Part shown: one piece after another, positions 3,968-52,331 of the stretch | Layout: each line of letters starts with the position of its first letter | How positions within the stretch are numbered: the stretch's first letter is position 1 | Sequence record: NC_019407.1 | Length of the DNA: 64,000 bases | Strand: one strand, 5' to 3' | Program-made: the position numbers and the translations under genes | The notes under the pieces: model-generated | The model's database searches: none | Told to the model about the DNA's origin: nothing | What the model saw: only the letters and a program-made list of their open reading frames with translations

Positions 3968-5020
3968 ATGACCTCTCATTCCATGGTCGCGCACCGTTGG
4001 GCGCAGGACGACGAGAACGGCCGCACCGCGCGCGGCTTCAACATGTATTTCGAGCGCTACGGGCGCGGCGCCGACCGCGTCAACGTGATTTTTTCCTACG
4101 GGACTCACTTCCCGGCCGCCGCCTTCGTGACCGACGCGCACGGCCGCCGCGTGGTCCTCTACACGACGCACCGCCGGAGCGTTTCGACCGCGAAACACCT
4201 TTCCCACATCCGCCACGCGATTCCGTCGGGCGTGCCGGTGTTTTCCGTGCCGAACGTGTCGCGGATGCACAAGCCGGGCGGCGCGGGCGACTTCCACGGG
4301 GACAACCTGCGCGCCTATATCGAGAGCGCCGCCGGCCTCGCCGAAAAGGCCAAGCGCGCCCGCGTCAACGGCCCTTGGCTGCTTAGCCAAGCCCGCGACC
4401 AACTCGCCGAAGCGCAACGCTACGCCGACGCCTTCAAGGTCAAGGGCTTCAAGGTCCCGGCCTTGGAAGACGTCGCCGGCCAATGGGCGAAGATGACGGC
4501 CGCCAAGGCGCGGGCCGAAGCCAAGGCCCGCAAGGAAGCCGAAAAGCGCGCCCGCGAAGCCCGCGAAGCCGAACGGCTCGCCGACGCCGAAGCCTTCGCC
4601 GCTTGGATGCGCGGCGAGCGCCAGAGCGCCCCGTTTAGCTACCGGGTGCGCGATGACGGGACCGTCTATCTTCGCCGCTTCCGGGGCGTGGTCCGCGACC
4701 TGCGCAGCCAAGAGCGCGACGGCTCGCGCGTCGATGAACTGCAAACCTCGCAAGGCGCGGCCGTGCCGTGGGAACACGCGGTCAAGGCCTTCCGGTTCAT
4801 CAAGCTTTGCCGCGAACGCGGCGAGAGCTTCCACCGCAACGGCCGGGTGATTCGCGTCGGACACTTCCAAGTTGACGCGATCAGCCCGAACGGGGACATG
4901 ACGGCCGGTTGCCACCGGTTCGCGTGGGATGAAATCGAACGCATCGCCAGGGCCGAAGGGGTTTTCGACCTCCCCGCCGACGCCGGCGCCGTCGAAACCC
5001 GGCAAGCCGAACCGGCCTAA
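3968..5020 (+). CDS. Hypothetical early protein (350 aa)
   Basis: ATG at 3968 after SD AAGGA; the ORF-track start at 3908 lies in the leader. Confidence 0.8.
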   Translation: MTSHSMVAHRWAQDDENGRTARGFNMYFERYGRGADRVNVIFSYGTHFPAAAFVTDAHGRRVVLYTTHRRSVSTAKHLSHIRHAIPSGVPVFSVPNVSRMHKPGGAGDFHGDNLRAYIESAAGLAEKAKRARVNGPWLLSQARDQLAEAQRYADAFKVKGFKVPALEDVAGQWAKMTAAKARAEAKARKEAEKRAREAREAERLADAEAFAAWMRGERQSAPFSYRVRDDGTVYLRRFRGVVRDLRSQERDGSRVDELQTSQGAAVPWEHAVKAFRFIKLCRERGESFHRNGRVIRVGHFQVDAISPNGDMTAGCHRFAWDEIERIARAEGVFDLPADAGAVETRQAEPA

Positions 5021-45926: not shown

Positions 45927-46703
45927 ATGGCGATCCAGAACCCCCATTCCACCACGCCCGGCACCATGCCGCACCTGACGCCCGGCGAGGTCGGCGTCAA
46001 CAAGGCCGACGACATTCTCTGGTTCCGCTCCCAGGGTCGGCGGGTGCCGATCACCCTGAGCGACCTTACCCGCGCCCCACCTGCGGACGGCTATGTGGGC
46101 GCGCCCCTGGCCCTGGAGGGTGGCGCTCCGGTCTGGAACGTCAAGCTCTTGCCGTCCTCGATCGTCGCCGGCGCGGTCAAGGTCGATCTCCCGCCCGCCG
46201 CCGGCCTGCACGCCGTGCCGAGCGTCCTGCTCCAGGGCCTGGGGGCCGATCGCGCCCTGGCGACTAATGATCTGGACCTCACCCCCTTCTACGTGCGTTC
46301 CGATTCCATCACCCTGACCCATTTGGCGTTCAGCGTCCGCTCGGCTGGCGCGCCGGCCATGCGCGTAGGTATCGTCGACAGTTTCGGCGTCGTCCAGGCC
46401 GATGTCCTGGTCGCCGCGCCGGTCGTGGGCGCCAATGTCGTGGCGCTCTCGCCAGTCCTGACCCTCCAGCGCGGGGTTTATCGCACCATCCTGGCGACGA
46501 CGGGCGCGGTGACGGTGGGGATCGCCACGGGCGCGCGCATGGAGCAGGGCTGGGACATCATCGCCGACGCCCCGTCGTTCATCCACGGCTACAGCGGCAG
46601 CAAGAACACCGCCGGCGGCATCGGGAGCCTGCCGGCCTTGACCCCGCGCCGCGCCGCCGTTCCGGGGCAGGATCACGCCGTCCTCCTGCGCTGGACGGCG
46701 TGA
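45927..46703 (+). CDS. Fibre-associated protein (258 aa)
   Basis: ATG at 45927; PHLTPGEVGVNKADDILWF motif; C-domain resembles the preceding two ORFs. Confidence 0.7.
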   Translation: MAIQNPHSTTPGTMPHLTPGEVGVNKADDILWFRSQGRRVPITLSDLTRAPPADGYVGAPLALEGGAPVWNVKLLPSSIVAGAVKVDLPPAAGLHAVPSVLLQGLGADRALATNDLDLTPFYVRSDSITLTHLAFSVRSAGAPAMRVGIVDSFGVVQADVLVAAPVVGANVVALSPVLTLQRGVYRTILATTGAVTVGIATGARMEQGWDIIADAPSFIHGYSGSKNTAGGIGSLPALTPRRAAVPGQDHAVLLRWTA

Positions 46704-46735
46704 ATCTTGACACTCGGTCCAAATGCGGTTAACCT
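46697..46735 (+). promoter_or_regulatory. GANTC/-35 promoter
   Basis: GGCGTGAATC-TTGACA-N17-TAACCT. Confidence 0.7.
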
Positions 46736-46765
46736 GCGCGCTCATCTGGAGTTTCGAGCGCCATC

Positions 46766-47032
46766 ATGGCCGAGCTTGTCCGCATCTATCACCCCGAGAC
46801 GAACGAGCCGTTCGACGTGATCCCGTCGACCGCCGAACGTCTGCGCCTGGGTCAAGGTCTGGACGGTCTGGTGTGGCTCTCGCAGCCCTTCTCCCGCGCC
46901 GCTGCCGAAGAGCCGGCGCCGGAAGCCCCCAAGGGGCGAGGTCGTAAGCGCGTCGCCGCGCCCGTCTCGGACGAAGCCGAAGACGATGGCTGGCGTGACG
47001 CGCCGACCGAGGACGCTTCCGAAGCCGCGTAA
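46766..47032 (+). CDS. Small acidic protein with GRGRKR (88 aa)
   Basis: SD GGAG; composition like 32627..33010. Confidence 0.7.
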   Translation: MAELVRIYHPETNEPFDVIPSTAERLRLGQGLDGLVWLSQPFSRAAAEEPAPEAPKGRGRKRVAAPVSDEAEDDGWRDAPTEDASEAA

Positions 47033-47076
47033 GGCGCTTCCCCGTCCACTCTGCTGAAATTCGGTCTCAGTCCCAT

Positions 47077-47152
47077 GTCGGTCTAGCTCATGGGGTAGAG
47101 CGGCGGTCTCCAAAACCGCGCGTGGCAGGTTCGAGTCCTGCGACCGGCGCCA
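47077..47152 (+). tRNA. tRNA-Trp(CCA)
   Basis: Cloverleaf, loop CT-CCA-AA, TTCGAGT, encoded CCA. Confidence 0.9.
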
Positions 47153-47157
47153 TTTCC

Positions 47158-47232
47158 GCGTCCATCGTATATGGGTTATTGCTTCGCGTTGCCAACGCGA
47201 CGAACCGGGTTCGAGTCCCGGTGGACGCTCCA
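47158..47232 (+). tRNA. tRNA-Gly(GCC)
   Basis: Loop TT-GCC-AA, U73, CCA. Confidence 0.9.
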
Positions 47233-47238
47233 ATCCAG

Positions 47239-47312
47239 GCGGATATAGCTCAAAGGGAGAGCTACTGCCTTCCAAGCAGAAGATGCGGGTTCGAGCCCCG
47301 CTATCCGCTCCA
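47239..47312 (+). tRNA. tRNA-Gly(TCC)
   Basis: Loop CT-TCC-AA, CCA. Confidence 0.9.
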
Positions 47313-47333
47313 AAATTTTCTTCCACGACAAGC

Positions 47334-47362
47334 TTGACAGCCGTCGAGATTTGTGAGAGCCT
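47334..47362 (+). promoter_or_regulatory. Promoter of the Glu/Asp tRNA unit
   Basis: TTGACA-N17-GAGCCT with TGTG extension, same as at 48129. Confidence 0.7.
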
Positions 47363-47370
47363 CAACCATT

Positions 47371-47433
47371 ATGACGCACCTCCTGACCCGTTACGAACGC
47401 GAGGCCACCGGCCTCGATACCACCACCGCCTAA
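47371..47433 (+). CDS. Leaderless 20-aa leader peptide MTHLLTRYEREATGLDTTTA
   Basis: ATG 8 nt after the -10; contains GAA, GAG and GAT codons; followed by hairpin(s) and TTTT. Confidence 0.5.
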   Translation: MTHLLTRYEREATGLDTTTA

Positions 47434-47467
47434 AAGCGGTTCTGGTAACCGAGGCCTTTTGTCATGT

Positions 47468-47545
47468 GGCCCGGTCGTCTAGCGGTTTGCAGGATTCGTG
47501 ACTTTCAATCACGAGAGCGGAGTTCGAGTCTCCGTCGGGCCTCCA
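47468..47545 (+). tRNA. tRNA-Glu(TTC)
   Basis: Loop CT-TTC-AA, CCA. Confidence 0.9.
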
Positions 47546-47568
47546 CCCCCAAAGCCTCCTCTGAGCTT

Positions 47569-47643
47569 GGTGCGTTCGTATATCGGTCAATACTCCGGAT
47601 TGTCGATCCGGCAAGAGGGGTTCGATTCCCCTACGCACCGCCA
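47569..47643 (+). tRNA. tRNA-Asp(GTC)
   Basis: Loop TT-GTC-GA, G73, CCA. Confidence 0.9.
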
Positions 47644-47654
47644 GGGCTTTCCCA

Positions 47655-47813
47655 ATGCCGCTTCAGTCGGGTTCGAGCGACGCCGTCGTCTCGCACAACA
47701 TCGCCAAGCTGATCGACGAGGGCTACTCCAAGGAGCAGGCCGTGGCGATCGCCCTCTCCCAGGCGCGCAAGCCGCGCCGTCCGAAGGTCTCGCGCGGCTC
47801 GCGCCGGCGCTGA
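47655..47813 (+). CDS. 52-aa basic protein [42 protein letters not shown]...
   Basis: Read by eye; PLxxGxS..NI..QAVAIAL pattern of small phage proteins. Confidence 0.7.
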
Positions 47814-47883
47814 TCTCGCCTCGCTAAAGCACCCCAGGTCCCCGGCCTCGTCGTGAGGCCGGCTGCGGTTGCGCGAGGCTTCC

Positions 47884-48108
47884 ATGACCTTTCTTGATCT
47901 TCGTTCGCAGTCGAGCGCCGCGCTCCTGCGCCATGTGTCTTCCCGATCCCCGATGGCGGAAGCGGCTCGCACCGAGTTGCTGACCCGAGGCCTCGTCCCG
48001 CTCCTCACGCGGCACAACGGCTGGCGCCTCGCCCCGAGCGAGCCCTTTCCGCAGCATCTCATCCCGCGCCCCGATCCGCTCGCGAGGTTCACGTGGCGGG
48101 CGGGATGA
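47884..48108 (+). CDS. Hypothetical protein (74 aa)
   Basis: ATG at 47884 after GAGG. Confidence 0.55.
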   Translation: MTFLDLRSQSSAALLRHVSSRSPMAEAARTELLTRGLVPLLTRHNGWRLAPSEPFPQHLIPRPDPLARFTWRAG

Positions 48109-48128
48109 AGATTTTTCTCACGCCGTGC

Positions 48129-48157
48129 TTGACATCCGTCTGAAGTTGTGAGAGCCT
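48129..48157 (+). promoter_or_regulatory. Promoter of the 14-tRNA sub-operon
   Basis: TTGACA-N17-GAGCCT. Confidence 0.75.
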
Positions 48158-48251
48158 GTCCAACGTCACGGATCACGACACTCCTCGGAGTGCAAAAGCG
48201 CGATCCTTCGTTATTCCCTGGACGCCAGCGGGCGTCCGTTCGAGAGCCATC

Positions 48252-48389
48252 ATGTTCGCCTTGTCGCATAACAGCCTGAGCACGAAAGCCGCCTCCCCGG
48301 CGTCGCTTTCGCTTGCCCTGCTGGCGACGGCCACGAAGCCCTCGACCAAGCCGACCACCTCGGCCTCGCACTCGACGGATCACCTCTAA
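48252..48389 (+). CDS. 45-aa attenuator leader peptide MFALSHNSLSTKAASPASLSLALLATATKPSTKPTTSASHSTDHL
   Basis: 41/45 residues are P, T, K, L, H, A or S, the amino acids of the downstream tRNAs. Confidence 0.85.
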   Translation: MFALSHNSLSTKAASPASLSLALLATATKPSTKPTTSASHSTDHL

Positions 48390-48454
48390 GGTATCCCGTC
48401 TCGGGTGCAGGCCTTGGAGCCGCACCCGCTACCAACATCCTGTTGACCTAGCGC

Positions 48455-48491
48455 AAGGCGGCTCCCAGCAAGGAGACCGCCTTTTCTTTTT
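48455..48491 (+). terminator. Attenuator terminator before tRNA-Pro
   Basis: AAGGCGG-CTCC/GGAG-A-CCGCCTT followed by TTCTTTTT. Confidence 0.85.
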
Positions 48492-48503
48492 CGCGTTGAT
48501 CAT

Positions 48504-48579
48504 CGGGGTGTAGCTCAGTCGGTAGAGCGCTCGGTTCGGGACCGAGAGGCCGTGGGTTCGAGTCCCGCCACCCAGACCA
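48504..48579 (+). tRNA. tRNA-Pro(CGG)
   Basis: C1-G72, A73, loop TT-CGG-GA; G2.A71 mismatch. Confidence 0.9.
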
Positions 48580-48586
48580 ACGCCAT

Positions 48587-48661
48587 CGGGATGTAGCTCA
48601 GCGGTAGAGCGCGCGGCTGGGGGCCGCGAGGCCGCAGGTTCGAGACCTGCCACCCCGACCA
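48587..48661 (+). tRNA. tRNA-Pro(GGG)
   Basis: Loop CT-GGG-GG, CCA. Confidence 0.85.
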
Positions 48662-48666
48662 ACAAT

Positions 48667-48739
48667 GCTGCTGCGCCTGGATCGGCGCCGGCCCCTTGGT
48701 ATGGGGAAGTAGAAGGTTCAATTCCTTCCGGCAGCACCA
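48667..48739 (+). tRNA. tRNA-Thr(GGT), atypical D-arm
   Basis: G1-C72/C2-G71, loop TT-GGT-AT, T-loop TTCAATT; C at position 8. Confidence 0.65.
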
Positions 48740-48744
48740 ACAAC

Positions 48745-48814
48745 GCCGATGCCTCTAGGAGGACACGTCTTTCGTAATGACGTCAGGTGGGTGCGATCCC
48801 CACTTTCGGCTCCA
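48745..48814 (+). tRNA. tRNA-Thr(CGT)-like, reduced D-arm, T-loop TGCGATC
   Basis: G1-C72/C2-G71, U73, loop TT-CGT-AA, CCA; 70 nt. Confidence 0.55.
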
Positions 48815-48849
48815 TCAAGATGATCGAGGAGAGATCAGACGAAACAAAT

Positions 48850-48936
48850 GGATGTGTCACCTCAGTGGCGAGAGGACCGGGCTCTTAATCCGGCAGCGAA
48901 AGCTCATCGTGGGTTCGAGTCCCACCACATCCTCCA
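48850..48936 (+). tRNA. tRNA-Lys(CTT) with long variable arm
   Basis: Loop CT-CTT-AA; V-arm AGC-GAAA-GCT; 87 nt. Confidence 0.85.
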
Positions 48937-48941
48937 ATAAT

Positions 48942-49031
48942 GCACGAGTGACCCGAGCGGCGAAGGGCGTCGACTTTTAATCGACTGGGCGTCCAGCCTC
49001 ACCGAGGGTTCGAGTCCCTCCTCGTGCTCCA
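48942..49031 (+). tRNA. tRNA-Lys(TTT) with long variable arm
   Basis: Loop CT-TTT-AA; 18-nt V region; class II-like D-arm; 90 nt. Confidence 0.85.
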
Positions 49032-49037
49032 AAATGT

Positions 49038-49123
49038 GCGAAAGTGGCGGAACAAGGTAGACGCACCGGTCTCAGGTACCGGCGGCTTCGGTCATGAGGG
49101 TTCGAGTCCCTCCTTTCGTACCA
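49038..49123 (+). tRNA. tRNA-Leu(CAG)
   Basis: Class II cloverleaf, loop CT-CAG-GT. Confidence 0.9.
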
Positions 49124-49130
49124 ACGACAT

Positions 49131-49215
49131 GCCGGTCTGGCGGAAATGGCAGACGCAGTGGCTTCAAGTCCCACCGCCTTCGGGCGTCCCGGTTCGATGC
49201 CGGGGACCGGCACCA
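49131..49215 (+). tRNA. tRNA-Leu(CAA)
   Basis: Loop TT-CAA-GT. Confidence 0.9.
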
Positions 49216-49221
49216 CCATGA

Positions 49222-49309
49222 TGCGAAGTGGCGGAATTTGGTAGACGCACCGGCATGAGAGGCCGGCGCCCTTCGGGGCGTGAGGGTTCGAGTCCCTTCT
49301 TCGCGACCA
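49222..49309 (+). tRNA. tRNA-Leu(GAG)
   Basis: Loop AT-GAG-AG. Confidence 0.85.
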
Positions 49310-49322
49310 AAGACGAGATCAT

Positions 49323-49394
49323 GCCGGCCGGCGCAGGCGCGCGGGGGAGGTTGTGTCCCTCCTTGGCTCAGTTCGATACTGAGGGTCGGTTCCA
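49323..49394 (+). tRNA. tRNA-His(GTG), minimal D-loop, no G-1
   Basis: Loop TT-GTG-TC; 7/5 stems; D-arm GCGC-AGGC-GCGC. Confidence 0.7.
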
Positions 49395-49399
49395 GTTAC

Positions 49400-49470
49400 G
49401 GGGTATGCGCAGGGCGCAGGCATCCTTTGCAAGGAAGTCGGGGTGGGTTCGAGTCCCACATACTCCACCA
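49400..49470 (+). tRNA. tRNA-Ala(TGC), minimal D-arm
   Basis: G3.U70 identity pair, A73, loop TT-TGC-AA. Confidence 0.8.
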
Positions 49471-49474
49471 ATAC

Positions 49475-49562
49475 GGTAGGTTGGCTGAGAGGCCTAAGGC
49501 GCCCGTTTCGAAAACGGGAGAACCGCAAGGTTCCGTGGGTTCGAATCCCACACCTACCTCCA
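49475..49562 (+). tRNA. tRNA-Ser(CGA)
   Basis: Long V-arm, loop TT-CGA-AA; U73. Confidence 0.9.
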
Positions 49563-49566
49563 ACAT

Positions 49567-49654
49567 GGATGTATGGCTGAGAGGCCGAAGGCGCCCGCTT
49601 GGAAAGCGGGTGAACCGCAAGGTTCCGTAGGTTCGAATCCTACTGCATCCGCCA
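49567..49654 (+). tRNA. tRNA-Ser(GGA)
   Basis: Long V-arm, G73. Confidence 0.9.
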
Positions 49655-49658
49655 ACAT

Positions 49659-49745
49659 GGTAGGTGGTTCCGGCCTGGGGCCGGACCCGGTTGCTAACCG
49701 GCCGGAGCCGCAAGGCTTGGGGTTCGATTCCTCCTCCTACCGCCA
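49659..49745 (+). tRNA. tRNA-Ser(GCT) with 8/4 fold and 6-7 bp D-stem
   Basis: 8-bp acceptor (one U.U), 4-bp T-stem, TCCGGC/GCCGGA D-stem, G73. Confidence 0.8.
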
Positions 49746-49753
49746 CTTCGATG

Positions 49754-50008
49754 TTGACACCCGCGACGCGGCCTGTCATACGTCACGACAGAGCGAACAC
49801 CCCCCGGCCGGGTTTGTTGTCATACCGGGTCGTCACGCCCCGTCGGGGCTCTAGTAGCTCTTCGTGTGGAGTTTTCCGCCTCCCTCCCAGACAAGGAGGC
49901 GGACCCAACCAACATCGCGATCTCCCGTGATCGTCGGCGACGGGCGCCGTCAGAGACCTTTGCCTGCGCGGCTCCGCTGCGGCCCTGGTCTCGTCCCGAC
50001 CAAATTTT
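49754..50008 (+). ncRNA. Promoter plus candidate structured non-coding transcript(s) ending in CCA-AATTTTTT
   Basis: TTGACA-N17-CATACG; multiple stems; no convincing ORF. Confidence 0.45.
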
Positions 50009-50021
50009 TTCGTCGTGGTGC

Positions 50022-50050
50022 TTGACACTGCGAAACTGTTCTGCTAGGGT
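50022..50050 (+). promoter_or_regulatory. Promoter of the 12-tRNA sub-operon
   Basis: TTGACA-N17-TAGGGT. Confidence 0.85.
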
Positions 50051-50057
50051 TCACGTC

Positions 50058-50156
50058 ATGAGCAAGACCTATCGTCAATTTGTGCGCCAGATTCAGGTCG
50101 TCCGGAATATCCGGGCGGGCCGCTCGCGCATGGCTGACGAAGGGTTCAGGGACTAG
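50058..50156 (+). CDS. Leaderless 32-aa attenuator peptide MSKTYRQFVRQIQVVRNIRAGRSRMADEGFRD
   Basis: ATG 7 nt after the -10; codons 5-19 are all Y/R/Q/F/V/I/N, matching the downstream tRNAs. Confidence 0.85.
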   Translation: MSKTYRQFVRQIQVVRNIRAGRSRMADEGFRD

Positions 50157-50186
50157 GTCCCACACCACGCTCAACCAGCTTTCGAG

Positions 50187-50223
50187 AGGCCCGCCTGGAA
50201 ACCCCAGGCGGGCCTTTTCTTTT
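50187..50223 (+). terminator. Attenuator terminator before tRNA-Tyr
   Basis: 12-bp AGGCCCGCCTGG/CCAGGCGGGCCT followed by TTTCTTTT. Confidence 0.9.
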
Positions 50224-50258
50224 CCCCCTTTCGATCACGGAGATCGCCAAACAGACAC

Positions 50259-50343
50259 GGATGCTTAAAGCTGGAGGGCTCCAGCCGGGGACTGTAAATC
50301 CCCTCTCTTCGGAGGAGTGGTTCGATCCCACAAGCATCCACCA
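50259..50343 (+). tRNA. tRNA-Tyr(GTA) with 8/4 fold and 6-bp D-stem/4-nt D-loop
   Basis: GGATGCTT/AAGCATCC, GCTGGA-GGGC-TCCAGC, GGGGA-CTGTAAA-TCCCC, GTGG/CCAC, A73. Confidence 0.85.
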
Positions 50344-50348
50344 ACCAC

Positions 50349-50424
50349 GGACTCGTAGCTCAGCAGGTAGAGCGCCGGCTTGAAACCCCGGAGGTCGGAG
50401 GTTCGACTCCTCCCGTTTCCACCA
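50349..50424 (+). tRNA. tRNA-Phe(GAA)
   Basis: Loop TT-GAA-AC; two acceptor mismatches. Confidence 0.85.
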
Positions 50425-50429
50425 ACAAC

Positions 50430-50505
50430 GCCCGATGAGCCAGATGGGAAGGCGCCGCCGTGACATGGCGGGATTGAGAAGGTTCGATTCCTTCATCAGG
50501 CACCA
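50430..50505 (+). tRNA. tRNA-Val(GAC)
   Basis: Loop GT-GAC-AT. Confidence 0.85.
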
Positions 50506-50507
50506 AT

Positions 50508-50583
50508 GCAAGTGTAGCTCAGTTGGTAGAGCAGCGGACCGATAATCCGCCCGTCCCTGGTTCGAGTCCAGGCATTTGCACCA
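50508..50583 (+). tRNA. tRNA-Ile(GAT), C33
   Basis: Loop CC-GAT-AA. Confidence 0.85.
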
Positions 50584-50590
50584 ATTCTGA

Positions 50591-50665
50591 TGTGGCATAG
50601 CTCAGGGGTAGAGCGCGCGCTTGATAAGCGTGAGGTCGGGGGTTCGAAGCCCTCTGCCACTACCA
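50591..50665 (+). tRNA. tRNA-Ile(GAT), second copy
   Basis: Loop TT-GAT-AA; U1.U72 mismatch. Confidence 0.85.
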
Positions 50666-50698
50666 GTTTCCAGGCCGGCGGAGATGCGCCGGACCTGA

Positions 50699-50774
50699 TG
50701 GCGTTTAGCATAGTGGGAGTGCAGGGGTGTCACATACCTCGATCGAACTGGTTCGATTCCAGTAACGCCAACCA
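50699..50774 (+). tRNA. tRNA-Val(CAC)
   Basis: Loop GT-CAC-AT. Confidence 0.85.
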
Positions 50775-50779
50775 AATGT

Positions 50780-50853
50780 TGAGGGTTCGTCTAATGGTAG
50801 GACGGCTGGGTCTGGTCCAGCTAATCTAGGTTCGAGTCCTAGCCCCTCATCCA
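50780..50853 (+). tRNA. tRNA-Gln(CTG)
   Basis: U1-A72, loop GT-CTG-GT. Confidence 0.85.
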
Positions 50854-50860
50854 AGCTTGT

Positions 50861-50934
50861 TCTCGGGTGGTCTAATGGTAAGACATCTGGTTTTGGTCCA
50901 GAGGATTGGGGTTCGATTCCTTGGCCGAGAACCA
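50861..50934 (+). tRNA. tRNA-Gln(TTG)
   Basis: U1-A72, loop TT-TTG-GT. Confidence 0.85.
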
Positions 50935-50949
50935 ACTATTTGAATTTAT

Positions 50950-51024
50950 TCCAGTCAATGCACAAGGTGTGCAGCGGCACTGTTAATGCCTGTGAGCCCG
51001 GTTCGATTCCGGGGTCTGGAGCCA
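50950..51024 (+). tRNA. tRNA-Asn(GTT)
   Basis: U1-A72, G73, loop CT-GTT-AA. Confidence 0.85.
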
Positions 51025-51050
51025 ACATGCCGGCCTCGGCCGGCACATGC

Positions 51051-51133
51051 GCCCTGGTAACCGAGGGGGATTACGAATCCCTTAGTCGTAGCAGGAGTTG
51101 AAAAGGGTGGTTCGAATCCACTCCAGGGTGCCA
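51051..51133 (+). tRNA. tRNA-Arg(ACG)-like lacking a D-arm, with 22-nt extra region
   Basis: 7-bp acceptor, only TAACCGA before the anticodon stem, loop TT-ACG-AA, normal T-arm, CCA. Confidence 0.65.
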
Positions 51134-51140
51134 AATTCAT

Positions 51141-51223
51141 AGCGCGCAGGCCGAGCAGGATCATCGTCAGGCGTCGCCCTCCGAAGGCGAAGAGGCCCGG
51201 TTCGAGTCCGGGGCGCGCTGCCA
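51141..51223 (+). tRNA. tRNA-Arg(CCG) with enlarged D-loop
   Basis: Loop CT-CCG-AA; 17-nt D-loop. Confidence 0.8.
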
Positions 51224-51226
51224 TCC

Positions 51227-51304
51227 GCGCGGGTAGCTCAATGGACCCAGAGCAGCCGTCTTCTACACGGTGGGTTGGGGGTTCGAGTCCCTCCCCGCGC
51301 GCCA
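51227..51304 (+). tRNA. tRNA-Arg(TCT)
   Basis: Loop CT-TCT-AC. Confidence 0.9.
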
Positions 51305-51307
51305 AAC

Positions 51308-51650
51308 TTGACGGGCGATGTCGAATCGCCGAGGATCAAACCGTAGGCCTCTTCCCGTGGGCCTGACATATACGTCCGCCAGCACTGCCATTCCGCGTCA
51401 GCGGGCGCGGCGCGAGGAGGGTTAACCCCTCGTTGTCGTGCAGCCGGGTGGTGTGGACGTCCCAACGTGATCTTCGAACGCGGCATGCCGTGGAGGGGTG
51501 ATCGGATGGCGAACCAAGGGACACCTCCTTATCCTAGCCTGGGCCGCATGGGGCTCCGCTGGGAGAAACGGCCTGACCCGACCGGAGGTGCGTCCAGGAT
51601 GCCGGCTCTCCATGCCAGAGTCTCGTGGACTAGGGTCTGAAATTTTTTCT
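51308..51650 (+). ncRNA. Promoter plus candidate ~310-nt structured RNA
   Basis: TTGACG-N17-GAGGAT; many nested stems; ORFs have atypical codon usage; ends at TTTTTT. Confidence 0.4.
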
Positions 51651-51662
51651 GGCGCTGATGTG

Positions 51663-51794
51663 TTGACACTCCTCGGAGGCTCGGCTAAAACCAGCAGCGT
51701 CAGAGCGGCGTTGGACCACGAGGTCCGCCGCGAGCTTCTGCGTTGTCGTCAGGAACGGCCCGTCAGCAATCCCGCTGGCGGGTCGTTTCGTTTT
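51663..51794 (+). ncRNA. Promoter plus candidate ~100-nt sRNA with its own terminator
   Basis: TTGACA-N17-TAAAAC; rod hairpin; 13-bp terminator with AATCCC loop followed by TTCGTTTT; no ORF. Confidence 0.55.
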
Positions 51795-51830
51795 GGGCGC
51801 AATGCGACGTTCAGTCCAACCATGGGTAGT

Positions 51831-51869
51831 GTCATGAATCTTGACTTTCGGCGCTTATTCCGGTAGCTT
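51831..51869 (+). promoter_or_regulatory. GANTC/-35 promoter
   Basis: GTCATGAATC-TTGACT-N17-TAGCTT. Confidence 0.7.
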
Positions 51870-51914
51870 GCCCGACATCAGCAAACGCTCACAAGTCGGG
51901 GACCGAGAGCCGTC

Positions 51915-52331
51915 ATGTCGCAAGACCACCACGGCTCGTCCTCGGGCCAAGAACGCATCTACCAGAAACTGGATGAGCTTGGCTCCATGCACGCGCGCAC
52001 CCGTGAAGATATTGCCCGCATCCAGGAGATGATGCGAGCGGTCGGTTCGTCGCAGGAGCGAATCGAAAAGCGCCAGGACCATTTCGAACGCGAAATCTGG
52101 CGCGAGATGGAAGATCGCGCCGCGCGCACGAGCGCCCAACTCGACGAAATCAAGAGCCACACCAACCTGCGGATCGAGGAGATCGAGGCCAAGGTCGACA
52201 CGATCCGCGAAGAGCGGATCGCCGAAAAGGCCCAGTGGCGCGGCCCCGAGAAGGCCATCGCCGCCCTGGTCGCCGTCGCCGGGGCCATCGCCGCCTTCGC
52301 CACGATCCTCACTTTCCTGAAGGGACACTAG
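51915..52331 (+). CDS. Coiled-coil protein with C-terminal TM helix (138 aa)
   Basis: Heptad-rich body; AIAALVAVAGAIAAFATILTFL. Confidence 0.75.
   Translation: MSQDHHGSSSGQERIYQKLDELGSMHARTREDIARIQEMMRAVGSSQERIEKRQDHFEREIWREMEDRAARTSAQLDEIKSHTNLRIEEIEAKVDTIREERIAEKAQWRGPEKAIAALVAVAGAIAAFATILTFLKGH

Follow-up and report, generated by a model that had tools for sequence, protein, structure and literature searches.

The window analysed here, a stretch of 64,000 nucleotides from NC_019407.1 numbered as in that record, belongs to the phiCbK-like siphophage Caulobacter virus Magneto (subfamily Dolichocephalovirinae). Its transfer RNA (tRNA) region (47077-51304) contains three leader cassettes, B, C and D, all on the plus strand, in each of which a small open reading frame (ORF) and a terminator-like hairpin precede an array of tRNA genes: Glu and Asp in B, 14 genes in C and 12 in D. 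All leaders lie inside the tRNA region, and tRNA genes alone are found downstream of them, not the biosynthesis or aminoacyl-tRNA synthetase genes that are the classical targets of attenuators. At the centre of this study stands cassette C, for which a preliminary description had proposed that a 45-codon leader, with a codon for each of the 14 downstream tRNAs, is translated and coupled to alternative hairpins. Based on the comparison with neighbouring cassettes and with related phages, each array appears to lie behind its own matched leader, which probably serves as a ribosome-mediated transcription attenuator.

Cassette C begins with a promoter predicted from consensus at 48129-48157 (-35 box TTGACA at 48129-48134, a 17-nucleotide spacer and the -10-like hexamer GAGCCT at 48152-48157). 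Leader ORF C (gp080, 48252-48389) follows and runs from ATG to TAA over 45 codons. Its translation, MFALSHNSLSTKAASPASLSLALLATATKPSTKPTTSASHSTDHL, is annotated in GenBank merely as hypothetical gp080, belongs to phrog_12742, a family of unknown function, and has no Pfam match. The residues outside the set P, T, K, L, H, A and S are M1, F2, N7 and D43; the translated ORF confirms that 41 of 45 residues, and all of codons 8-42, the proposed sensing run, are drawn from this set. The run of 35 is the longest of its kind in all six frames of the 64-kb window, the runner-up reaching 17. Proteins of the window consist to 43.8% of these seven residues (31 confident genes), which makes the previously assumed background of 45% a fair one, and the binomial tail for 41 of 45 is 3e-11 where a chance of about 1e-10 had been estimated.

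Array C (48504-49745) comprises Pro-CGG, Pro-GGG, Thr-GGT, Thr-CGT, Lys-CTT, Lys-TTT, Leu-CAG, Leu-CAA, Leu-GAG, His-GTG, Ala-TGC, Ser-CGA, Ser-GGA and Ser-GCT. Ten of these genes are found by default ARAGORN, between 48504 and 49654. Three more, Thr-GGT (48667-48739), His-GTG (49323-49394) and Ser-GCT (49659-49745), emerge with relaxed ARAGORN settings and inspection of the anticodon loops, and the count of 14 given earlier is completed by Thr-CGT (48745-48814), whose atypical 9-nucleotide anticodon loop is kept in all lineages. With conservative wobble, leader C matches 14 of 14 anticodons, as had been claimed, and contains every codon that had been listed as a match; 35 of 44 codons are cognate. 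Full coverage of the 14 anticodons by a random 44-codon ORF with phage codon usage has a probability of 8.6e-4, and it occurs in 0 of 9,487 sliding windows in real genes. A synonymous-codon test, in which the peptide is fixed and the codons must reach every anticodon, gives no significance in single lineages (P=0.12-0.19). Leader D shows a weak enrichment of rare or A/T-ending codons (P about 0.02) and leader C shows none, so that rare-codon use is no strong argument.

The end of leader C and the region behind it form a chain of five pairing elements. Hairpin A (elements 1:2, 48368-48408) joins GCACTCGACGG (48368-48378, codons 39-43) to CCGTCTCGGGTGC (48396-48408) and holds the stop codon in its apical loop. 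Hairpin B (2:3, the anti-antiterminator, 48402-48428) pairs CGGGTGC (48402-48408) with GCACCCG (48422-48428). The antiterminator (3:4, 48416-48465) pairs GGAGCCGC (48416-48423) with GCGGCTCC (48458-48465) and encloses a further hairpin at 48428-48452, in which one compensatory change, from A-U to U-A, is seen among relatives. The predicted intrinsic terminator (4:5, 48455-48491) is made of AAGGCGGCTCC and GGAGACCGCCTT with the U tract TTTTCTTTTT extending up to 48491, and the equivalent site in phiCbK is annotated as a rho-independent terminator.

In RNAfold, both the minimum-free-energy and the centroid structure of the free RNA (48360-48491) consist of hairpin A and the antiterminator, with z = -6.2 against shuffled sequences, and a ribosome masked on the stop codon shifts the fold to the CGGGTGC:GCACCCG pair and the terminator. 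When the ribosome mask is moved along the ORF, the probability of the terminator is 0.97 from codon 35 to the stop and 0.01-0.9 upstream, with the minimum at codons 30-34. These results reproduce the hand folding of the preliminary description, in which hairpin A accompanied the antiterminator and a ribosome at the stop codon favoured the terminator. All of its helix coordinates are exact, and its interval, 48129-48491, starts at the TTGACA -35 box and finishes with the U tract. The thermodynamic switch recurs in cassette C of Kabachok and Gurke, with the step at codon 35 as in Magneto; the helix sequences differ but the five-element chain is alike. Bertelyvirus C1 has an analogous hairpin A whose loop likewise holds the stop codon and whose inner sequence differs, and the GGGTGC/GCACCC pair is kept. 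In truncated transcripts the 5' arm of the C terminator is always paired, and that comparison is uninformative.

The proposal of a translated, codon-matched leader coupled to alternative hairpins gains support from a second matching leader in the same window. The predicted promoter of cassette D (50022-50057, TTGACA-N17-TAGGGT-N7) ends directly at the ATG of leader ORF D (50058-50156), an unannotated ORF of 32 codons (MSKTYRQFVRQIQVVRNIRAGRSRMADEGFRD) in which codons 5-19 all specify Y, R, Q, F, V, I or N. This 15-codon run equals the amino-acid set of array D (50259-51304), whose 12 genes are Tyr-GTA, Phe-GAA, Val-GAC, two Ile-GAT, Val-CAC, Gln-CTG, Gln-TTG, Asn-GTT, Arg-ACG, Arg-CCG and Arg-TCT, and it is the longest such run in the window in all six frames. 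The genes for Tyr, Asn, Arg-ACG and Arg-CCG were assigned from their anticodon loops and from homologues annotated in Colossus, PW, Gurke and Bajun. Leader D has a cognate codon for each of the 11 distinct anticodons (P=5e-4 against random ORFs), and the two leaders are nearly disjoint, with two residues of D's set in C and six of C's set in D.

Cassette D can form three alternative helices. Hairpin 1:2, the anti-antiterminator (50081-50133), pairs TCGTCCGGA (50098-50106) with 50110-50118 and has a lower tier in which 50081-50088 pairs with 50126-50133. Antiterminator 2:3 (50111-50198) joins region 2, CCGGGCGGGCC (50111-50121, codons 18-22), to GGCCCGCCTGG (50188-50198), and the predicted intrinsic terminator 3:4 (50188-50223) joins GGCCCGCCTGG to CCAGGCGGGCC in a perfect 11-bp GC stem with a U tract at 50215-50223. 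Region 2, although inside the ORF, is a near copy of the 3' arm of the terminator. These alternative helices are conserved in an alignment of 11 D leaders. The 2:3 helix is 97.5% paired across the 11 phages; in Bajun, a G-to-A and a C-to-U change keep it perfect and weaken the terminator, and in Colossus a G.U pair has become U-A. Terminator 3:4 is 98.5% paired, with compensatory U-A to A-U swaps, and hairpin 1:2 has 93.9% of its cells paired and three pairs altered on both sides. The RNAalifold consensus likewise contains the lower tier, in which codons 8-10 pair with codons 23-25.

The fold of the D leader has z = -6.5 against shuffled sequences. When the transcript is cut at region 3, little energy separates the 2:3 fold (-58.0 kcal/mol) from the extended 1:2 fold (-55.9). 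A ribosome mask makes 2:3 impossible with the A site at codons ~17-26 and lets it form at all other positions, codons 1-16 included, and folding with masked ribosomes points the same way for D in 11 lineages. In 11 of 11 lineages, a distance of exactly 36 nucleotides separates the ATG of leader D from the first T of TTGACA, despite a diverged spacer. With a 17-nucleotide spacer and a 6-nucleotide -10 box, transcription would start at the A of AUG and yield a leaderless messenger RNA (mRNA). In Caulobacter, such mRNAs are frequent and efficiently translated.

Each of the leaders B, C and D recurs in all subfamily lineages that were examined, namely Shapirovirus, Poindextervirus, Colossusvirus, Bertelyvirus and three groups of Brevundimonas phages. 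The layout TTGACA-N17-hexamer precedes every leader in all relatives. The peptides themselves diverge, leader C reading MTFSTHKPSTLKPATGAASLAHASLLTPATSKPSLSRSL in Colossus and VTTLSHKLSLKSAPSALLSLAHAPATLKSTPATVASTSETFS in Bajun, yet residues of the own set make up 84-95% of C leaders (nine lineages) and about 100% of D cores. Within codons 5-19 of leader D, 11 of 15 alignment columns vary, with exchanges such as F/N, V/R and I/F/N/Y, and of 15 alternative residues 13 still belong to the set, against 23% expected for single-nucleotide neighbours (P=4e-7). Past codon 19 the share falls to 7 of 24, the background level. Substitutions between lineages are chemically non-conservative yet remain within the set of the array, and insertions and deletions in the leader ORFs are multiples of three. 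Set-preserving substitutions together with in-frame indels indicate that selection acts on the identity of the tRNAs that decode the leader and not on the peptide.

The content of leaders and arrays also changes together. The codon AAA is confined to leaders of phages that have a tRNA-Lys(UUU) gene (6 of 6 lineages), and in Bertelyvirus, where tRNA-Trp has moved to the end of array C, the C leader has gained a TGG codon. Outside the Dolichocephalovirinae, the CbK-like Erythrobacter phages XM05 and vB_EliS-L02 (L02) and the Sphingobium phage Lacusarx group their tRNAs differently, in arrays {P,M,V,I,A,N}, {K,G,D,E,R,F} and {S,Y,L,T,H,Q,C,W}, which are preceded by leaders NVIAMNNPAPAIMVPVAMA, KRDRREGDERGF and TQTALHLLTQTPLYCQWQYSCSSL, respectively. 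The P-type leader MFNVIAMNNPAPAIMVPVAMACVEGTRD stands before Pro-Pro-Met-Val-Ile-Ala-Asn, and in XM05 and L02 the P-type leaders have canonical GC hairpins with U tracts. The K-type leader MTYGFTKRDRREGDERGFTS (in Lacusarx ...RFGKRDRREGERGF...) stands before Lys-Lys-Gly-Gly-Asp-Glu-Glu-Arg-Arg-Phe. The S-type ORF, predicted to be leaderless and reading MFTQTALHLLTQTPLYCQWQYSCSSL in XM05, MFTQTALHLLTQTTLCWQCQYSSLSPF in L02 and MFTQTTLLTQCHYWQLLSSSSL in Lacusarx, precedes Ser-Tyr-Leu-Leu-Leu-Thr-His-Gln-Gln-Ser-Cys-Trp, and in all three phages its ATG is found at 36 nucleotides from TTGACA.

Over 22 leader/array pairs from eight genomes, leaders are enriched for their own array 2.0-fold on average, as opposed to 0.5-fold for the other arrays of the same genome, and in 8 of 8 genomes the true pairing outranks every permuted one. 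The notion of codon-matched leaders that was raised for cassette C is thus also borne out by set-preserving conservation in at least nine lineages and by the regrouped arrays of distant phages, and leader composition has almost certainly been selected to match the array.

Further searches did not widen this range of phages. Pattern scans of IMG/VR for more D-type leaders returned chance matches only (the first gave 120 loci, none with as many as three tRNAs, and the second gave four unrelated loci). Searches by tblastn with leaders of 20-26 amino acids revealed no new lineages and are too insensitive for such short queries. A distant blastn search with the Lacusarx array added no further lineages, and the tRNA cluster of roseophage DSS3P8 was not in the two 50-kb pieces inspected.

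Taken together, these patterns suggest that CbK-like phages gate each tRNA array with a matched, multivalent leader-peptide attenuator in which stalling of the ribosome leads to read-through, a reading to which we assign a probability of about 0.72. A sigma-70-type promoter would drive a short leader RNA, leaderless in D, nearly so in B and with a 5' untranslated region of ~87 nucleotides in C. The central run of the leader would consist of codons read by exactly the downstream tRNAs, the speed of ribosome transit would be what matters, and the peptide itself is probably irrelevant. In cassette C, a ribosome that reaches the stop codon would hold hairpin A open, CGGGTGC would then pair with GCACCCG, the terminator at 48455-48491 would form and transcription would stop before the tRNA genes. 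A ribosome stalled on a hungry codon before about codon 35 would leave hairpin A intact and GGAGCCGC free to pair with the 5' arm of the terminator, and the polymerase would read into the 14 tRNA genes. Cassette D would act as a classical 1:2, 2:3 and 3:4 attenuator with sensing codons 5-16 on and upstream of region 1, where a stalled ribosome would open or preclude hairpin 1:2 and leave region 2 free. Such a design would amount to multivalent negative feedback, in which a shortage of the aminoacyl-tRNA of any member of the set turns the genes on and accumulation turns them off. Intrinsic termination relieved by stalling is accordingly the output best supported by folding and comparative analysis, and we consider it the probable one.

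Several observations weigh against this reading. In the models, both termination at the hairpins and translation of the leaders are inferred from sequence. The four C helices are invariant among alignable relatives and hence show no covariation, because the stretch is 96% identical within Shapirovirus and Poindextervirus. Once hairpin A has formed, antiterminator and terminator of cassette C are nearly isoenergetic, and in cassette C of Bajun the mask scan shows no step and hence no thermodynamic switch. The last C hairpin has no U tract in Colossus and C1, nor has the last hairpin of the S-type leaders of XM05, L02 and Lacusarx. At equilibrium, full-length D RNA always favours the terminator, and the decision must therefore be kinetic, that is, co-transcriptional, as in classical systems. 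The codon match has its flaws as well: leader C uses GCC, not strictly a codon of tRNA-Ala(UGC), for seven of its nine Ala residues, and the D leader of PW has a Trp codon where its array D has no Trp tRNA. Finally, stalling reports charged tRNA, so that starvation for an amino acid would flip the switch too, a condition that extra tRNA would not relieve.

The remaining difficulties concern cassette B (47334-47462) and the K-type leaders. In cassette B, TTGACA at 47334 is followed by an ORF predicted to be near-leaderless (47371-47433, MTHLLTRYEREATGLDTTTA) and a hairpin at 47410-47456 with TTTTGT behind it, and array B (47468-47643) consists of Glu-TTC and Asp-GTC. The start codon lies 36-39 nucleotides past TTGACA (at 36 in two of seven leaders, at 37-39 in the rest). 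Codons 14-20 form the 5' arm of the hairpin, its loop contains the stop codon, its U tract is weaker than those of C and D, and the equivalent site in phiCbK is annotated as a terminator. CGAGGCC at 47400-47406 duplicates the terminator base CGAGGCC at 47450-47456 and forms a local hairpin with 47410-47416. Although E9, E11 and D16 are kept in all lineages, leader B is not enriched in Glu and Asp (15% against a background of 11%). A ribosome at codon 14 or beyond abolishes the B hairpin and one at codons 1-10 does not, and in K-type leaders a ribosome at the stop codon covers the terminator; both arrangements suit coupling of the opposite sign.

Perhaps, then, the leaders are translated, array-tuned sensors but their output is something other than read-through upon stalling. 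The sign could be inverted, a closely coupled ribosome on the terminator letting the polymerase through and a lagging one leading to termination, as in pyrBI, or the hairpins could govern processing, stability or Rho access of the tRNA precursor. In B and K-type leaders the 5' arm of the terminator does lie within or just after the last codons, where a ribosome at the stop codon abolishes it and one at codons 1-10 spares it. Several final hairpins are without a U tract, and in XM05, L02 and Lacusarx no consistent switch emerges when the P- and K-type leaders are scanned at equilibrium with a ribosome mask. As in pyrBI, the terminator of cassette B and of the K-type leaders overlaps the end of the leader ORF, and a close ribosome would block the hairpin; pyrBI, however, senses uridine triphosphate through polymerase pausing, not tRNA supply, and the model is relevant to cassette B only, to which a pyrBI-like coupling may apply. 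Overall, such an output is unlikely. In cassette C (Magneto, Kabachok, Gurke) and in cassette D (11 lineages) the sensing run lies upstream of the element whose occlusion favours termination, the hairpins of C, D and the P-type leaders of XM05 and L02 are canonical GC hairpins with U tracts, and positive feedback on tRNA supply would have no obvious benefit.

A very improbable alternative is that the short ORFs encode small functional proteins, whether low-complexity, secreted or membrane-bound, that the hairpins are their terminators and that the tRNAs are expressed independently. It would account for the annotation of gp080 as a coding sequence with a family of its own, phrog_12742, and Ala/Ser/Thr/Pro-rich low complexity is common in high-GC genomes, all of these residues having NCN codons. 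Against it, set membership is kept where residue identity is poorly kept and the substitutions are chemically non-conservative, and the D, K, P and S leaders differ widely in composition, each matching its own array. Region 2 of leader D duplicates a terminator arm inside the ORF and co-varies with it, no promoter-like TTGAC box is present from the terminator to the first tRNA of each array, and Pfam has no match for gp080.

A compositional accident of GC-rich DNA in one frame, for which it speaks that second-position C alone gives S, P, T and A and that coverage of the 14 anticodons is not rare given the amino-acid sequence (P=0.19), is effectively refuted by the pairing test, the D substitutions and a run of 35 that is twice as long as the next in any frame (binomial P=3e-11), and it leaves unexplained the AT-rich run of leader D (TAT CGT CAA TTT ... 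AAT ATC) and the recurrence of the pattern in at least seven leader types and three phage groups.

Attenuation with relief by stalling, the reading preferred here, has clear counterparts among the amino-acid operon attenuators (thr, ilvGMEDA, his, leu, trp), which share the codon-rich short ORF, the 1:2, 2:3 and 3:4 helices, the intrinsic terminator and, on the model proposed here, the selection of the fold by ribosome position. One leader may there sense several amino acids: in E. coli and Salmonella, the thr leader senses Thr and Ile, and the ilvGMEDA leader senses Leu, Val and Ile. The phage system differs in that it is phage-encoded and controls tRNA genes, that is, the sensed molecules and not biosynthetic enzymes, and in that a leader would sense up to seven amino acids through 14 anticodons. 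Two of the three leaders are on predicted leaderless mRNAs, cassette C links five pairing elements and places its stop codon in the loop of a hairpin, and no leader family of Rfam matches. The leader-peptide attenuator of the phenylalanyl-tRNA synthetase operon pheST (pheM) sets the supply of the aminoacyl-tRNA that it senses. It resembles the proposed phage attenuators in acting on a component of the translation apparatus and differs in its target, a synthetase, in sensing one amino acid and in being a cellular gene.

T-box leaders, found mainly in Firmicutes, control synthetase, transport and biosynthesis genes. As is proposed for the phage leaders, they tie genes of translation supply to the state of specific tRNAs by a choice between terminator and antiterminator. 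However, their specifier codon and T-box motif contact uncharged tRNA directly, with no ribosome involved, whereas the phage leaders contain an ORF and have no T-box match: an Rfam cmscan of 46600-52000 (E<=1) found no leader family and no T-box (RF00230), only tRNAs and low-scoring chance matches. A further parallel is offered by the polycysteine short ORFs of mycobacteria, whose leaderless mRNA is reported to start at the AUG and whose codon run senses aminoacyl-tRNA supply and controls downstream operon genes (bioRxiv 10.1101/834739). In the system as described there, which is bacterial and not of phage origin, Cys alone is sensed and the genes controlled encode proteins of Cys metabolism. 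A full-text literature search, whose coverage did not extend to older subscription literature, yielded no description of leader peptides or attenuators controlling tRNA genes, and leaders or attenuation are not mentioned in the genome papers of phiCbK and Lacusarx.

Why phages carry tRNA genes has long been debated, and compensation of codon usage, translation after host shut-off and escape from tRNA-cleaving defences have all been put forward; of the regulation of these genes almost nothing is, to our knowledge, known. It is likely, in our judgement, that the CbK-like phages of Alphaproteobacteria possess on-demand, self-referential tRNA arrays, in which only the limiting sets are topped up and leader and array have co-evolved while tRNA genes moved from one array to another. 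Sets might become limiting, for example, through host shut-off, mismatch of codon usage or cleavage by host anticodon nucleases. The trigger could be the loss of host tRNAs late in infection or their cleavage by host defence nucleases, and the latter is made plausible by work in which phage tRNAs rescue translation from host nucleases, e.g. PARIS and the tRNA-Lys of T5 (PMC11464382).

Phage tRNA expression would then be feedback-controlled and not constitutive, with the ribosome as sensor and the sensed molecule as the controlled product, which would close a loop that attenuation was not known to close and would be the first case of tRNA genes under translational attenuation. The leader would constitute a sequence-encoded record of the tRNAs that the phage expects to run short. 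Fusions of leaders to reporters would reveal in vivo which sets of aminoacyl-tRNAs limit during infection or defence, and synthetic biology would gain a compact, modular tRNA homeostat. In addition, hypothetical mini-genes beside tRNA arrays, such as gp080 and phrog_12742, and unannotated leaderless ORFs would be regulatory.

Other features of the region touch on the tRNA genes themselves. Eight tRNA-like genes are absent from the GenBank record and can be added to it: Thr-GGT, Thr-CGT, His-GTG and Ser-GCT of array C, at the positions given above, and Tyr-GTA (50259-50343), Asn-GTT (50950-51024), Arg-ACG (51051-51133) and Arg-CCG (51141-51223) of array D. ARAGORN labels the gene at 50950-51024 'Ile(aat)', yet its loop CTGTTAA reads GTT (Asn). 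With the added genes, the tRNA complement of Magneto would come to about 31 and serve 18 amino acids, Met and Cys being left without a tRNA. Both tRNA-Lys genes (48850-48936 and 48942-49031) are 87-90 nucleotides long with a long, class II-like extra arm, the Arg-ACG and Arg-CCG genes measure 83 nucleotides each, and tRNA-Tyr has a 7-bp D stem. Such odd tRNA bodies might be a sign of unusual identity rules or of evasion of host anticodon nucleases. In phiCbK, the gene at the position of tRNA-Arg(TCT) (L005 6213-6290) reads Gly(TCC); it is otherwise conserved, and the D leader is unchanged.

Leader B (MT[HY]..RERE..G[LR]DT..A) resembles the K/G/D/E/R/F-type leader of XM05 and L02 (47371-47433 compared with XM05_a 4754-4816, the reverse complement of L144). 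It may be a relic of a larger ancestral array whose Lys, Gly, Arg and Phe genes have moved, which would explain its Arg and Gly codons. As a possible leader of the Trp-Gly-Gly group (cassette A), gp077, an 88-residue ORF preceding that group, was rejected, having neither a terminator nor a matching composition.

Two non-coding stretches flank cassette D and its array. Between arrays C and D, 49754-50010 has a promoter-like TTGACA-N17-CATACG, continues for about 230 nucleotides with no ORF at the leaderless position and ends in a terminator-like hairpin with AATTTTTT (49986-50010); this region has no Rfam match and is a candidate small RNA. Past the last tRNA, 51308-51655 has a TTGACG box and then about 330 nucleotides of GC-rich non-coding DNA ending in AAATTTTTT. 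Neither ARAGORN nor Rfam finds a transfer-messenger RNA (tmRNA) there; relatives outside the subfamily carry one at the equivalent place. XM05, L02 and Lacusarx encode tmRNAs (L141 1718-2230, L142 6739-7154 and L143 9784-10177), that of XM05 in permuted form, and the tags in those phages end in ...VNDNDVVETPMALAA and ...VVVARDEVRLAA. In XM05 and L02 the tmRNA is preceded by a predicted leaderless ORF of seven codons (MIVTRSI and MIVIRST) 35-36 nucleotides past TTGACA.

Between the D terminator and tRNA-Tyr lies the conserved motif GGAGATCGCCA (50236-50250). In Colossus, Gurke, Kabachok and C1 it forms the Shine-Dalgarno sequence and ATG of a mini-ORF of 4-5 codons (MNNGG, MTGGD, MTGN); copies in relatives are at L009 5768-5798, L011 11462-11490 and L012 7686-7716, and the Magneto copy has no ATG. 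A palindrome, ATGTTCCCGATCGGGA(T/A)CA, is repeated between the tRNA genes of Bajun, C1 and XM05 (L013 5418-5440 and 5468-5490; L014 270-290 and 320-340; L141 1-19) and may be a site of processing or recombination.

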